Under the pieces are notes generated by a model that was given only the letters and a program-made list of their open reading frames with translations, searched no databases and was not told the origin of the DNA. A DNA stretch of 64,000 nucleotides from the sequence record MH791398.1; one strand, 5' to 3'. The translations under genes were made by a program, and so were the position numbers. This document shows positions 2,896-11,967 of this stretch, piece after piece. The first letter of the stretch is position 1; every line of letters starts with the position of its first letter.

Positions 2896-3396
2896 ATGTT
2901 AGAAAAAATGCTTAAATTCGACGAGGGTTCGAAGCTTACTGTTTATTGGGATACCGAAGGATATCCGACTATCGGTATTGGTCATTTAATAAAGAAACTT
3001 CGTACGAAAGATATGGGGGAAATTAACCGTGAGTTAAGTTCCCATGTTGGGAGGGTTATTACCGACGGTAAGATTACTCAATCAGAAGAAAGTCAACTTT
3101 TTGCTAAAGATCTTGAGGTAGTTAGAAATTCTATGAAAGGGTATGTCGATTTATGGTCTACATATGTTGGATTAGATGAAGTCAGAAAAACCGCATTGGA
3201 AAATATGGTTTTTCAGATGGGGGCTAAAGGTGTAAATGGTTTCCCATCAATGCTTCGCGCTATGCGCTCCAAGAACTGGACAGAAGCCAAGAAACATGGG
3301 CTTGCTAGTGCTTGGGCGAGACAAACGCCAAATCGCGCTAAGAGAGTTACAGACGTTATTGAGACTGGTACTTACAAAGGTTATCCATTCGCATAA
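2896..3396 (+). CDS. e: Soluble phage lysozyme (GH24, T4 e/gp5-type endolysin)
   Basis: DEG...YWDTEGYPTIGIGHL catalytic E/D/T motif; ALENMVFQMG; WARQTPNRAKRV. Confidence 0.92.
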   Translation: MLEKMLKFDEGSKLTVYWDTEGYPTIGIGHLIKKLRTKDMGEINRELSSHVGRVITDGKITQSEESQLFAKDLEVVRNSMKGYVDLWSTYVGLDEVRKTALENMVFQMGAKGVNGFPSMLRAMRSKNWTEAKKHGLASAWARQTPNRAKRVTDVIETGTYKGYPFA

Positions 3397-3399
3397 AAC

Positions 3400-3428
3400 A
3401 AAAGGGATCCCATATCGGGATCCCTTTT
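3400..3428. terminator. Bidirectional rho-independent terminator
   Basis: AAAAGGGATCCC-ATATC-GGGATCCCTTTT between convergent lysozyme and tk genes. Confidence 0.85.
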
Positions 3429-4003
3429 TATTTTCCACTCATACCAGCAACCCAGTGTTTACGACAAACAGAAATATATCTATCGTTTCCACCAATACAA
3501 ACCTGATCACCAATAACTTTTTTACCGTTCTCATCAACACGAAGGTTCATTGTTGCTTTAGAACCACACCAACAAATTGTTTTATGTTCCACAATTTGTT
3601 CAGCCATAACCACAAGTTGACGACTTGCATCAAACATCTCTCCATTGGAGTCAGACATAAGACCATAACACATAACAGGAACATCGTAGTTATCAACAAT
3701 AAAAGCCAGTTGCTTTACTTGTTCGACCGTCATAAATTGGGCTTCATCGATAAGAATACAATCTATTTTCTTTCCGATCTTATAACTCAAATAAAGATCA
3801 GTTAAATTCTCCTTATCAGAAAACATAATTGATGGACGAGAAACCCCCAATCGTGAAGAAACCATTTCCCCATCACGAGTATCAATGCAAGGTTTTAAAA
3901 CTAAAACTCCCATTCCTCGTTCTTCATAATTATAAGCAACTTGCAATAAATGAGAACTCTTTCCCGCATTCATTGCGGAATGATGGAAATGCAAACTAGA
4001 CAT
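3428..4003 (-). CDS. tk: Thymidine kinase
   Basis: HSAMNAGKS P-loop, ILIDEAQF, VMCYGL, C-terminal Zn-binding Cys (CWCG...YISVCRKH). Confidence 0.95.
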   Translation of the reverse strand: MSSLHFHHSAMNAGKSSHLLQVAYNYEERGMGVLVLKPCIDTRDGEMVSSRLGVSRPSIMFSDKENLTDLYLSYKIGKKIDCILIDEAQFMTVEQVKQLAFIVDNYDVPVMCYGLMSDSNGEMFDASRQLVVMAEQIVEHKTICWCGSKATMNLRVDENGKKVIGDQVCIGGNDRYISVCRKHWVAGMSGK

Positions 4004-8475: not shown

Positions 8476-8712
8476 TTACAGGCTTTCTATGTATTTAATC
8501 ACTCGGTTTAGTATTTCATCTGAATCATTTATCTCAATATCATCAAATGCATACTTTATCTTTTTTATTACAGTTTCTTTCTTCCATCCGATCTTGAAAG
8601 CATCATTAACGAAAGAAACCCAATCAATAATATAACCGGAATTATAAAATTTCTCTATCAGAATATCCAACGGAATACCATTTGTTTCAAACTGATAAAA
8701 TACATTACACAA
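8476..8712 (-). CDS. Hypothetical protein with an AlaRS-like motif; start uncertain
   Basis: FYQFETNGIPLDIL resembles AlaRS FxLYDTYGFPLDLT; frame remains open upstream to about 8820. Confidence 0.5.
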   Translation of the reverse strand: MCNVFYQFETNGIPLDILIEKFYNSGYIIDWVSFVNDAFKIGWKKETVIKKIKYAFDDIEINDSDEILNRVIKYIESL

Positions 8713-8821
8713 AACCGGAATACCACTATTGGTATAACCATTTACAAAAACACTATTTTTACCTTTACGTCCTAACGGCTTGCGTTTAGCGGTGACATAT
8801 ACAACCTCTCTTTTTAAGTTT

Positions 8822-9294
8822 TAGCTTCATGTGCGGCTGCAAAGCAGGTCGAACCACCAAGGCACATACTTGTTGTTGTGGTTCCGTAAATCGATCCGGT
8901 CGCACCATCACCGGACTTAATAGCATTGGCTATCCGAGCCCAACATACAAACATCATCACCCCAATGGGCTACGCCTGCAAAACGGTCTTGCTCGTTACT
9001 TTTACGCTTAGGCCCTTATGGGAATCTAAGCCTTATATTTAACGTCATAACGGACGCGCTTATGTGATGGCTTGAATCAGTGGTCATTCACAAGCAATTC
9101 TCCCTATGTAACCTTTTACCCGTCACGGACTAGAACCTTATTACAGGGAAGGAACCTACATCACCATTTGAGAAATGAGAGAGGTCGGGGTTCGGTTTTT
9201 ATTTTCTAGCTTCCACTAGATTTTTTACAAATACCGGTGGGCTACTTAAAGCGTCGATTCTCATAGACCGGACTATTGACGAGAATCCAAAATT
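8822..9294 (-). ncRNA. Candidate large structured ncRNA, segment A
   Basis: About 470 nt with no sense ORF and at least 8 hairpins, directly 3' of tRNA-Thr. Confidence 0.55.
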
Positions 9295-9370
9295 TGGAGC
9301 CGGGTGTGGGACTCAAACCCACGACCTACGGATTACAAGACCGTCGCTCTATCAACTGAGCTAACCCGGC
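9295..9370 (-). tRNA. trnT: tRNA-Thr(UGU)
   Basis: Cloverleaf, anticodon loop CTTGTAA, encoded CCA. Confidence 0.93.
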
Positions 9371-9649
9371 AGAGGATTATAATCAGGATCGTTAGACTGT
9401 GATTATATCCTAATGTAGTTGACATGCTATCACAAGGAGGAAGGACGTTCAACCGATTTTTGTCCATCTGTTCGTTGTTTGGTAAAGGACTGTTACCTCA
9501 AGTTTCACCCTGCTTGTCAAGGGGTAGTTACCATATCGTCTTTATACTACCAATCCCGCCTGAAACCTAATGGCACGTTTCAGGATATCCAGATTCTCTA
9601 TGGCTGGCTTATTCCGGGGCATACGTCGTTACCCGTTCTTTGTGCTAAG
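9371..9649 (-). ncRNA. Candidate structured ncRNA, segment B (between tRNA-Pro and tRNA-Thr)
   Basis: 8-bp stem 9559-9566/9577-9584 and 11-bp stem 9373-9384/9401-9411; no sense ORF. Confidence 0.45.
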
Positions 9650-9725
9650 TGGTCGGTGATACAGGACTCGAACCTGTGACCCTCTGGTCCCAAACCAGAC
9701 GCGCTACCAACTGCGCTAATCACCG
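9650..9725 (-). tRNA. trnP: tRNA-Pro(UGG)
   Basis: CGGTGATTAGCGCAG..., loop TTTGGGA, CCA. Confidence 0.95.
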
Positions 9726-9879
9726 AAAAGTTCCAAACCAACTGTATTTTACATACCAGATGACCACATCCCTATAATGGTTGATTTGGATTACCCCGTG
9801 CTTATCCGTAACGGTTTAAAACCGCAAGGGGGCATCGTCTCCGAGGATTTTATCAGAACGTCTTCTAACTTCTTCTATT
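9726..9879 (-). ncRNA. Candidate structured ncRNA, segment C (between tRNA-Tyr and tRNA-Pro)
   Basis: 11-bp stem 9732-9742/9780-9790 with a G-U pair only on the minus strand; CCCC/GGGG closing stem with a nested hairpin. Confidence 0.4.
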
Positions 9880-9970
9880 TGGTGGATGTTGTTGGATTCG
9901 AACCAACTTGTTTACCCAGAGGGAACGGATTTACAGTCCGCCGCCACACCGCCATCGTAGCCGAACATCC
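9880..9970 (-). tRNA. trnY: tRNA-Tyr(GUA)
   Basis: Loop CTGTAAA, long variable arm, CCA. Confidence 0.9.
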
Positions 9971-9976
9971 AGAATT

Positions 9977-10052
9977 TGGCTGGCGAGGTGGGATTCGAAC
10001 CCACGACATACGGATTAACAGTCCGCTGTTCTACCTACTGAACTACACGCCA
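9977..10052 (-). tRNA. trnN: tRNA-Asn(GUU)
   Basis: Loop CTGTTAA, CCA. Confidence 0.92.
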
Positions 10053-10053
10053 T

Positions 10054-10131
10054 TGGAAGCGGGAGGTGGATTTGAACCACCGATTTCCAGATAATGAGTC
10101 TGGCGAGAACTCCTGACTTCTCCACCCCGCT
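10054..10131 (-). tRNA. trnM: tRNA-Met(CAU), fMet-like body, atypical
   Basis: AGCGGGGTGGAG 5' end like tRNAfMet; loop CTCATTA (U37); CCA. Confidence 0.75.
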
Positions 10132-10174
10132 ATGATATTTAGGGTGGTCTTTCACCCCTTCATGAATCTTGGTC

Positions 10175-10203
10175 ATTATAACCCGGCTACATACGCGCAT
10201 CAA
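10175..10203 (-). promoter_or_regulatory. sigma70-type promoter for the downstream tRNA/ncRNA run
   Basis: TTGATG-N17-TATAAT on the minus strand. Confidence 0.65.
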
Positions 10204-10237
10204 CATCCCTTTTATAATTTAGAGAGCTATGGGACTC

Positions 10238-10477
10238 TTAACAGCTCTTATTAAGATGATCTTTCAACCGTTCTTTTTCAACACACCACGATATTTTATT
10301 TTCTTTTATCCAAGGAGGTGTATCTGACCAATAAATAACAGATAGTTTAGATATGAAATTCGATATAATCTCAATATCCCAATCAGAAAACCCGATATGT
10401 TTATATGAAATCAATTCGGTTGGAGAATTTACATCAAATGACTTTAATCCGTTATCACCAACATATTCCATTTTCAT
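10238..10477 (-). CDS. Hypothetical protein in the tRNA cluster
   Basis: 79 aa ORF. Confidence 0.55.
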   Translation of the reverse strand: MKMEYVGDNGLKSFDVNSPTELISYKHIGFSDWDIEIISNFISKLSVIYWSDTPPWIKENKISWCVEKERLKDHLNKSC

Positions 10478-10495
10478 ATCACGTTTCCCTTTATC

Positions 10496-10572
10496 TGGTG
10501 GCCCCTACTGGACTCGAACCAGTGACCAACCGATTATGAGTCGGCTGCTCTAACCAACTGAGCTAAGGGGCC
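10496..10572 (-). tRNA. trnI: tRNA-Ile2(CAU), lysidine type
   Basis: GGCCCCTTAGCTCAG...CTCATAA...GGGGCCACCA, closely resembling E. coli ileX. Confidence 0.9.
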
Positions 10573-10576
10573 AAAT

Positions 10577-10644
10577 GATATGTTCTTTAGTCGAGCCGAC
10601 TTATCCGTATTTTTTCAACGGTGAGCTGATAGCTGTAACACATC
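10577..10644 (-). ncRNA. Small cloverleaf-like non-tRNA element
   Basis: 8-bp closing stem GATGTGTT/AACATATC enclosing three short hairpins. Confidence 0.35.
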
Positions 10645-10656
10645 AATTTTAAATTT

Positions 10657-10732
10657 TGGAGCGGGTAGCCGGTAACGATCCGGTCTACTCAAACTTGGAA
10701 GGCTTGCATGTATCCATAAACACCTTACCCGC
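10657..10732 (-). tRNA. trnG: tRNA-Gly(UCC)
   Basis: Loop CTTCCAA, CCA; T-loop ATCGTTA is non-canonical. Confidence 0.85.
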
Positions 10733-10733
10733 T

Positions 10734-10817
10734 TGGTCGGGATGGACGGACTCGAACCGTCACGCCTATGGCGCTAGAACCTAAATCTAGTGTGTCTGCC
10801 AATTTCACCACATCCCG
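10734..10817 (-). tRNA. trnL: tRNA-Leu(UAG)
   Basis: Loop TTTAGGT, variable arm, CCA. Confidence 0.9.
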
Positions 10818-10894
10818 TGGTGCGCCGTACTGGATTCGAACCAGTGACCCACGCTTTAGAAGAACGTTGCTCTATCCAACTGAGCTAACAGCGC
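10818..10894 (-). tRNA. trnR: tRNA-Arg(UCU)
   Basis: Loop CTTCTAA, CCA. Confidence 0.92.
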
Positions 10895-10895
10895 A

Positions 10896-10944
10896 ATTTA
10901 TATAAACATCATATCATAGTTAGAAAGGATGTTTAACTTTTATT
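10896..10944 (-). promoter_or_regulatory. Early-type promoter, repeat copy 1
   Basis: GTTAAAC-N17-TATGAT with extended TG; 49-bp direct repeat with 11670-11718 (2 mismatches). Confidence 0.65.
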
Positions 10945-11338
10945 TGAAGTATTTTTCGAAGTAAGCGACTGGATGTCTTGCTTCTTCATCATACTCGTAT
11001 TTAGGGGTATCAGAAAACAACACCCTATAAGCAGTTTTCATCCCTGAACCATATGGTATCTCAATTTCGTCGTTAAAGTCAAATGCGATATAACCTTTTT
11101 TACGAAGGGAACGACAACTAACACTCAACCAAGGCCCACAACAGGATTTAAGTCTACCAATTGCGTAGATATCCTTACCCTCATTGTTAATATAACAATA
11201 AATCTTGTCTACATCAACACCATGGAGTTTTTTCCATTCTTCACTGGTTTGTTTGAAGATCAAACTTGATTGAACCACAGTAAGACCGTTCTTTACAAAC
11301 TTACTAATACCAAGAATATGAATATCATGTTTATTCAT
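10940..11338 (-). CDS. Hypothetical protein
   Basis: 132 aa ORF, GAG RBS. Confidence 0.65.
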   Translation of the reverse strand: MNKHDIHILGISKFVKNGLTVVQSSLIFKQTSEEWKKLHGVDVDKIYCYINNEGKDIYAIGRLKSCCGPWLSVSCRSLRKKGYIAFDFNDEIEIPYGSGMKTAYRVLFSDTPKYEYDEEARHPVAYFEKYFK

Positions 11339-11574
11339 TTTAATATCTCGATTTTTGGTAGAAAGGCTTCAAATGTTTACCACGCATAATCTTTACACAT
11401 TTACCTTTACAGTGATCTTCGTTGAAGATACTACCCCAAAGGATCCCACACATGTAATTTCTGATGTATACGTTCATATTAAGCATCTCATATTGAATTT
11501 GAGAGATGATAAACTCGTTTAACGTCCAAAAAGCTCATTCAACAAAAAGGAATTTGAGTTTATCATCTTGTATT

Positions 11575-11667
11575 TGGTGCGTGAGGTGGGAATCGAACCC
11601 ACGATGTGCCATTATGCAGTATCGGATTTTAAGTCCGATGCGTTTCAACCAACTTCGCCACTCACGC
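11575..11667 (-). tRNA. trnL: tRNA-Leu(UAA)
   Basis: Loop CTTAAAA, long variable arm, CCA. Confidence 0.9.
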
Positions 11668-11669
11668 TC

Positions 11670-11718
11670 ATTTATATAAACATCATATCACAGTTAGAAA
11701 GTATGTTTAACTTTTATT
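11670..11718 (-). promoter_or_regulatory. Early-type promoter, repeat copy 2
   Basis: Near-identical to 10896-10944; directly upstream of a tRNA. Confidence 0.65.
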
Positions 11719-11967
11719 TTTACTTTCTTTTATACCAAGTCGATATGCTTCTACACAGTATGCGTCGATCCTCGATACTGGGACCATAAAAGCTTTAGAA
11801 AGCCGAATCTTAATACGTTCGTTCTCTTTAGCCCGCTCATATAGTTTTCGAAATGGCTCAGGGTCTATAGGCTGAACAGAACATATTTGGTTTGCTATAT
11901 CTAGCGGGTATATTCTTCCACCCCAAGTTACTTTTTCTGATTCTAAAAAATTCATATCATTTCTCAC
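11707..11967 (-). CDS. Hypothetical protein
   Basis: 86 aa ORF overlapping the upstream stop codon. Confidence 0.55.
   Translation of the reverse strand: MRNDMNFLESEKVTWGGRIYPLDIANQICSVQPIDPEPFRKLYERAKENERIKIRLSKAFMVPVSRIDAYCVEAYRLGIKESKNKS

Follow-up and report, generated by a model that had tools for sequence, protein, structure and literature searches.

The window analyzed here is a stretch of 64,000 nucleotides (nt) that derives from Aeromonas phage Asswx_1 (MH791398; 100% identity), which belongs to the Straboviridae (Emmerichvirinae, Ceceduovirus). It carries a cluster of ten tRNAs, and positions 8822–9879—the region treated in this work—make up the distal part of that gene array. A reading based on the sequence alone had seen here a candidate giant structured RNA of the GOLLD/ROOL class with tRNA-Thr and tRNA-Pro embedded in it or, as a fallback, a new RNA family freed by tRNA processing. 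Comparison with related phages resolves the region into separable modules, three of which (named B, C2, and C3) are new families of phage RNAs embedded in tRNA arrays, with the rnaC and rnaD RNAs of phage T4 as precedent. The tRNAs and RNAs concerned are:

9880–9970, minus strand: tRNA-Tyr(GTA), found by ARAGORN; upstream edge of the region
9650–9725, minus strand: tRNA-Pro(TGG), found by ARAGORN and the Rfam tRNA model
9454–9652, minus strand: B RNA, matched by covariance model R1 at 197.7 bits and supported by covariation
9295–9370, minus strand: tRNA-Thr(TGT), found by ARAGORN and the Rfam tRNA model
~9038–9205, minus strand: C2 RNA, matched by covariance model R2 at 103.7 bits and supported by covariation
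9090–9200, minus strand: C2 core, the single R2 match in the window
8890–9031, minus strand: C3 RNA (~145 nt), from the comparison of relatives and their consensus fold

All three tRNAs lie on the minus strand where the sequence-only reading had put them, with Rfam tRNA model scores of 68–70 bits for tRNA-Pro and tRNA-Thr, and neither ARAGORN (8822–9970) nor the Rfam tRNA model (E ≤ 10 in the spacers) finds any further tRNA or pseudo-tRNA there. Most of what that reading described was borne out: subtracting the two internal tRNAs leaves ~906 nt against an estimated 900 nt, the region is richer in GC (0.42–0.49) than the flanking genes (~0.29–0.37), and the remaining spacers of the cluster are mostly 0–6 nt long by the ARAGORN coordinates. 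The region also lacks a credible sense open reading frame (ORF), as had been claimed; sense-strand ORFs reach at most 48 aa and none is conserved. The longest of them (8814–8960) is interrupted by a tRNA-Trp in phages P19, CC2, and ZPAH1, and no reading frame is open throughout the members of families B and C3 that were compared. The description of the region as densely self-complementary did not hold for the window sequence taken by itself, as the minimum free energy (MFE) z-scores of the three spacers are −1.77 (9726–9879), +0.24 (9371–9649), and −2.17 (8800–9294). Structure emerges only by comparison with relatives and not from single-sequence folding.

BLAST comparison with relatives splits the region into blocks, each with its own pattern of presence and absence, and these set the module limits: A (9726–9879), B together with a linker (9371–9652), C1 (9224–9294), C2 (~9038–9205), C3 (8890–9031), and C4 (8822–8889). 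In the Ishigurovirus phages 65 and avDM6, B, C1, and C3 are retained, but C2 gives way to ~30 nt; between tRNA-Thr and C1 they carry additional tRNAs (Ile/Ser/Asp or Ser/Asp, with Ile, Ser, and Asp in phage 65). In ZPAH1 an insert of 80 nt separates C2 from C3, while in CC2 (locus L004, ~3395–3560) the first hairpin of C3 is duplicated on either side of an inserted segment, the second copy having a different loop and inner stem. A tRNA-Trp stands between C3 and C4 (window ~8890) in P19, CC2, AP1, ZPAH1, and Aswh_1 (e.g., L002 2998–3069 and L006 3415–3488) and is cleanly absent from Asswx_1; this gain or loss of one tRNA is cassette-like. Both B and C2 are, moreover, found singly in unrelated phages, and every helix supported by covariation stays inside one module. 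The modules are thus evolutionarily independent cassettes, individually gained and lost.

A single GOLLD/ROOL-class RNA of ~1 kb, with tRNA-Pro and tRNA-Thr sitting in variable linkers, would fit a GC-rich, ORF-free region. GOLLD is encoded by phages and prophages near tRNA islands, can hold tRNAs in its linker, and has no known function; ROOL is likewise carried by phages, frequently close to tRNA islands, has many pseudoknots, and lacks a known protein partner (bioRxiv 10.1101/2024.12.08.627333). The region shares with them only the association with phage tRNA islands. Rfam 15 was searched at the gathering score over the whole window, where it returned tRNAs only, at E ≤ 10 with permissive filters over 8500–11800, where solely tRNA-related and chance matches appeared and neither GOLLD (RF02032) nor ROOL (RF03087) was among them, and at E ≤ 1 over seven related loci, where the blocks again gave only tRNAs and chance matches. 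Many GOLLD members exceed 800 nt and share a universally conserved 3′ domain, whereas the region consists of separable modules of 145–190 nt; nor is there a single large conserved unit of the ROOL kind. The modules do not co-occur as parts of one contiguous RNA but are separate in other phages and individually missing or interrupted in close relatives, with their covarying helices all local. Because they are gained and lost independently, one giant RNA is untenable, and we give this explanation next to no credence. Taken together, the Rfam searches, the relatives, and the covariation leave the original observation largely right, its headline wrong, and its fallback roughly right.

Module B provides the clearest case of a structured RNA. 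Members of the family are ~170–190 nt long and fold into five hairpins and two pseudoknots. The single copy in the window, whose R1 match begins no more than 3 nt from the encoded CCA of tRNA-Pro, pairs in all helices:

9635–9632/9618–9615, minus strand: helix H1
9584–9579/9564–9559, minus strand: helix H2
9551–9547/9527–9523, minus strand: helix H3
9522–9518/9512–9508, minus strand: helix H4
9497–9493/9485–9481, minus strand: helix H6
9516–9513/9502–9499, minus strand: pseudoknot PK1
9490–9487/9465–9462, minus strand: pseudoknot PK2

In a MAFFT alignment of 10 members, all of the 320 cells assigned to the hairpins and one pseudoknot are paired (100%), and 15 of the 32 pairs show double changes. 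Extending this to 15 members, metagenomic ones included, gives 99.6% of 494 cells paired and double changes at 18 of 33 pairs, compared with 25–43% pairing in slid controls for the 15-member fold. Several pairs occur as three pair types. PK1, a compact pseudoknot of the H type, joins the loop of hairpin 4 (ACNAG) to CUNG five nt downstream; PK2 connects the loop of hairpin 6 to a 3′ strand and is found as GUCC/GGAC, ACCC/GGGU, GCCC/GGGC, AUCC/GGAU, and UUCC/GGAA. The core strings TTGAC..GCAG..AAAYT.GAGGT are invariant, as are many unpaired nucleotides, and members differ by 1-nt insertions and deletions (indels). A further helix proposed by RNAalifold (157–159/181–183) was discarded: it is broken in both B copies of metagenome contig L040, which keep PK1, and PK1 was put in its place.

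A distant BLAST search of a phage collection, with the E. coli-phage version of B as query, identified the family in 70 phage records from phages of Escherichia, Aeromonas, Klebsiella, Proteus, Salmonella, Morganella, and Shigella. These include jumbo phages (the Asteriusvirus members 121Q, PBECO4, and vB_Ec-M-J, Klebsiella phages RaK2 and K64-1, and Salmonella jumbo phages), T4-like phages of the genus Bragavirus (Proteus, Morganella, and Shigella), and T5-like Proteus phages (Novosibvirus). Across the three groups, conservation amounts to 80–91% nucleotide identity over the matched stretches. B takes up the space separating tRNA-Gly from tRNA-Asp in Pm5461 and SdyM_006; in the T5-like Proteus phage 1 its neighbors are tRNA-Leu and tRNA-Ser, and it again fills the gap. 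The copies in vB_Ec-M-J and RaK2 are solitary, with a sigma70-type TTGACT/TTGACA-N17-TATAAT/TATTAT sequence on the 5′ side and a T-run on the 3′ side. A metagenome scan returned five real B loci and one further locus unmatched by R1; on contig L040 (2097–2611), two divergent copies (173.8 and 149.4 bits) lie on either side of a tRNA-Arg(ACG). The family was not found in 5,426 complete E. coli genomes, a scan of species-representative genomes gave a single locus that R1 does not match at E ≤ 0.01, and an IMG/VR scan with a long B pattern returned isolates only. Given this distribution, B is so far a property of virulent phages.

Module C2 measures ~170 nt, its 3′ hairpins reaching to ~9038, and is built around a core of ~60 nt, GUAG.UUCCUUUCCUGUAAUAAGGUU-hairpin-GUAAAAGGUUACAU, preceded by a 5′ AAAAAGCUGACC motif. 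Its helices are:

9197–9194/9156–9153, minus strand: P1
9152–9149/9115–9112, minus strand: P3
9130–9128/9124–9122, minus strand: P4

P1 occurs as four sequences (AAACC/GGUU, AAGCU/AGCUU, ACUCC/GGAGU, and AGGC/GCCU) and the three pairs of P4 as five (GUC/GAC, GAC/GUC, GCC/GGC, CCU/GGG, and GAG/UUC), while P3 shows changes from C-G to A-U and from C-G to U-A. In a MAFFT alignment, 92.6% of cells are paired and 6 of the 11 pairs carry double changes, with slid controls at 35–52%. T5-like Aeromonas phages AhSzw-1, Akh-2, and AhP_Mru1 have the core within their tRNA arrays; in Citrobacter phage Ci1 and Cronobacter phages LPCS28 and S13 it is flanked by the lysozyme gene on one side and the tRNA cluster's early promoter on the other. 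It is also present in Aeromonas phage Ahp1_CNU, Shewanella phage KASIA, and uncultivated viral contigs; eight loci came out of an IMG/VR scan with a C2 pattern, L021 among them apparently by chance. KASIA-type C2-like elements lie in intron-rich terminase/portal regions (L014 2445–2670 and 2897–3859; L012 ~1957–2150), and the C2-like region of L014 gave no match when used as a BLAST query. Both KASIA-type copies (L012 and L014) have a 3′ AGAGCAGUCCGUUAA motif, and the element in L014 is followed by an ORF of 320 aa resembling Zn-finger/GIY-YIG (homing-endonuclease-like) proteins. A 38-nt portion of the window, the C2 3′ hairpin at ~9058–9095 (minus strand), matches plasmids of Vibrio parahaemolyticus and Shewanella baltica (89.5%, E = 6e-4), which may be due to chance.

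Another explanation would make C2, and perhaps B as well, a small ribozyme that splices or cleaves itself, or else a mobile element of intron-like nature inserted into an older C1–C3 RNA gene. C2 behaves as a clean insertion when compared with phages 65 and avDM6, has at its start, following a U or C, a conserved A-rich/GCUGACC motif, and contains R/S-like strings (AGGUUCCAGUCCG) that resemble group I cores, and KASIA-type relatives sit beside genuine group I introns and the homing-endonuclease-like ORF. Against this, no ribozyme or intron model of Rfam matches: RF00028 misses both C2 and B at E ≤ 10 (8500–11800), yet as a positive control it recovers the true introns that L012 and L014 carry elsewhere (47.7–80.6 bits) while missing the C2-like elements of the same loci. 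At ~170 nt, C2 also falls below known group I intron lengths, no exon halves or split host gene are visible around it, and the T5-like phages, Ci1, and LPCS28 have it in plain intergenic DNA with no recognizable split gene. An intron-like or ribozyme nature of C2 is accordingly a minority possibility, and this explanation as a whole strikes us as quite improbable.

Module C3 is confined to T4-like phages of Aeromonas (it is Emmerichvirinae-specific, with 21 records), and an IMG/VR scan with a C3 pattern returned only isolates and chance matches in coding genes. Its identity between genera is 85–95%, compared with 75–80% for the adjacent protein genes. The consensus fold (−46 kcal/mol) comprises 42 pairs, four with double changes, and a single broken cell; examples are UGUAG/UUACA versus UGCAG/UUGUA versus UACAG/UUGUA, and UCCGGU/ACCGGA versus UCUGGU/ACCAGA. 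In ZPAH1 and Aswh_1, tRNA-Trp begins 2–7 nt after the 3′ end of C3. In the window the fold consists of:

9031–9006, minus strand: hairpin with a GNRA cap
8995–8991/8939–8935, minus strand: helix closing a multibranch structure
8980–8946, minus strand: long hairpin
8934–8919, minus strand: hairpin
8916–8894, minus strand: hairpin

Conservation of this kind could also stem from small proteins encoded on either strand. The GenBank records of Asswx_1 and phage 65 annotate short hypothetical ORFs at this place (ASswx1_176, which lies on the opposite strand, and ST65p134/135, respectively), and the window copy of B has an antisense frame that stays open over its full length. Among members, however, open frames vary in both strand and frame, and indels are not multiples of three, as with the 1-nt indels of B. 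In C2, the spacing of the two invariant blocks is 12, 13, or 14 nt depending on the member, which rules out a coding constraint, and we regard small proteins as an extremely unlikely cause of the conservation. ASswx1_176 (105 aa; window 9777–10094, plus strand) is a coding sequence on the strand opposite tRNA-Tyr and tRNA-Asn and very probably a spurious call; within the stretch examined, the GenBank record has no tRNA annotated.

The remaining parts of the region, together with two promoter-like motifs, are as follows:

10203–10175, minus strand: sigma70-like TTGATG-N17-TATAAT upstream of tRNA-Met-Asn-Tyr; motif match at 10/12 positions
9726–9879, minus strand: spacer A (154 nt), only in Ceceduovirus, 97–100% identical; MFE z = −1.77
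9403–9376, minus strand: ATCACA-N16-TATAAT inside the region, directly upstream of tRNA-Thr; motif match
9371–9453, minus strand: linker joining B to tRNA-Thr, with two TATAAT boxes; conserved in phages 65 and avDM6
9224–9294, minus strand: C1, with a hairpin (9287–9256) followed by conserved CGACGCUUUAAGUAGCC
8822–8889, minus strand: C4 (68 nt, conserved), with a GGAACCAC/GUGGUUC hairpin

A, C1, and C4 are provisionally classed as linkers or hairpins, and we set them apart from the RNA families B, C2, and C3. Since the Ceceduovirus copies of spacer A are nearly identical, comparison is uninformative for it. In phages 65 and avDM6 the stem of C1 shows a compensatory change from U-A to C-G, and this hairpin could act in processing or protection; C1 had also been considered as a repeated regulatory cassette, an idea that was dropped, as it is present in a single copy in the window. 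C4 follows tRNA-Trp in CC2 and P19, is absent from avDM6, and may act as 5′ leader to the gene downstream of it. The sequence-only reading had placed the region downstream of one TTGATG-N17-TATAAT promoter. This motif is present, but its singleness is unproven: a second motif lies at 9403–9376, and promoter-like matches occur at chance level (13 found versus 10.1 ± 3.3 expected).

Such boxes in the linker between B and tRNA-Thr would suit a different explanation, namely that the blocks are DNA-level or decaying elements such as promoter or terminator cassettes, homing-endonuclease targets, intron remnants, or degenerate tRNAs. It would also fit the standing of tRNA clusters as hot spots of homing endonucleases, the KASIA-type elements in intron-rich terminase regions beside an endonuclease-like ORF, and the lack of a testable structure in A, C1, and C4. 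DNA sites would not be expected to show compensatory changes on one strand, two pseudoknots of B included. The tRNA and group I models also miss the blocks at E ≤ 10, although the latter does find the introns of L012 and L014, and B has its own promoter in jumbo phages. We consider this explanation improbable.

The evidence is better accommodated by a chain of independent small structured noncoding RNA genes (B, C2, and C3) between the tRNAs, whose products would be processed and stable, and we judge this reading to be likely. Several points weigh against it. Members of B represent few clades, so that independent compensatory events are fewer than the cell counts imply, and the B alignment A8 was fitted to the model, although the independent MAFFT alignment A4 gave the same picture. 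Sequence diversity in C3 is low; in C2, P3 crosses a possible UGUAA/UUACA helix and the length of P2 varies. Single-sequence folding energies are unremarkable. Finally, the transcription, processing, and stability of B, C2, and C3 are inferred, and their functional role is a best guess.

The closest known analogues are the T4 species 1 and 2 RNAs (rnaC and rnaD), stable noncoding RNAs of 139 and 119 nt that lie in the T4 tRNA cluster, directly adjoining tRNA-Arg, and share their genomic niche with the modules of the window; no function is known for them (PMC3014915, PMC9697503). B resembles them in lying within a phage tRNA cluster and adjoining tRNA genes on the same strand. Homology was not detected: nhmmer searches with rnaC or rnaD over the window and all compared loci gave no match at E ≤ 10, and R1 (E ≤ 10) and R2 (E ≤ 1) matched nothing in the rnaC/rnaD stretch of the T4 tRNA locus; neither model finds a copy of its family in T4. 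A likeness of C2 to rnaD noticed by eye was dropped after the negative nhmmer and covariance model searches. Unlike rnaC and rnaD, B is larger, has two pseudoknots, and is present in T5-like and jumbo phages too. None of the three families is in Rfam 15, and we found no description of B, C2, or C3 in the literature, nothing specific on noncoding RNAs of phage tRNA clusters beyond T4 RNAC/RNAD and GOLLD/ROOL, and only unrelated primer matches when searching with core sequence strings. A large computational catalogue of candidate phage RNAs exists (PMC10690425), and it may hold an unnamed entry for B, C2, or C3.

If the T4 tRNA cluster is a guide, early or middle promoters would drive the synthesis of polycistronic precursors from the array. 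Cutting by RNase P at the 5′ end of the downstream tRNA, together with 3′ maturation of the upstream tRNA, would then release the intervening RNAs, whose compact folds could render them stable in parallel with the T4 species 1 and 2 RNAs. To this extent the fallback reading of a new family freed by tRNA processing stands: there are at least three structured RNA families, their ends adjoin tRNAs, and their folds covary, with T4 as the model for the processing itself. Cassette shuffling is plausibly driven by homing endonucleases in tRNA clusters. Genes of this type lie within the cluster in P19 (P19_0370, L002 1038–1541) and ZPAH1 (an HNH nuclease, L006 1297–1656), paralleling segB of T4, and SegB targets a conserved sequence of the tRNA TΨC stem-loop and spreads the T4 tRNA region (PMC2330249).

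Because B exists as a free-standing, promoter-driven gene in jumbo phages, it appears to be more than a passive spacer, and a role in trans is favored. With low confidence, we suggest that B, C2, and C3 act in trans during infection by binding a protein or small ligand, for example—and equally tentatively—as decoys or modulators of host nucleases that target tRNAs or process RNA. It is doubtful, though worth stating, that B represents a new phage RNA class with a specific activity (a sponge for a ligand or protein, a decoy for defense nucleases that target tRNAs, a ribozyme, or a particle that assembles itself as other short phage RNAs do) and C2 and C3 further classes. If true, phage tRNA arrays would be general “RNA toolkits” beyond being tRNA supplements.

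Structured RNAs in tRNA clusters are no oddity of T4, as at least three unrelated families travel as cassettes in tRNA arrays, and B spans three very different groups of virulent phages (T4-like, T5-like, and jumbo) with covariation. B also offers a well-defined target in phages that infect laboratory E. coli, among them the 121Q/PBECO4 group. The families further correct annotation, as stretches of the B, C2, and C3 types are now unannotated or carry spurious “hypothetical protein” calls.

Two neighboring features of the window deserve mention. The 84-nt spacer between tRNA-Gly and tRNA-Met (10573–10656, minus strand) can form a cloverleaf-like arrangement of three hairpins closed by a 9-bp stem (MFE z = −2.99; 0 of 200 shuffles fold as well). 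It is called by neither ARAGORN nor the Rfam tRNA model and may be a small RNA or a degenerate tRNA. The gene directly downstream of the region (~8800–8476, minus strand) shows protein-level conservation and synonymous changes across five phages back to ~8797, and has no in-frame ATG, GTG, or TTG ahead of the TTG at 8712. A conserved Shine-Dalgarno sequence and ATG (8798) lie in the −1 frame, which reaches a stop after 8 codons, and this arrangement suggests a frameshift or non-canonical initiation.

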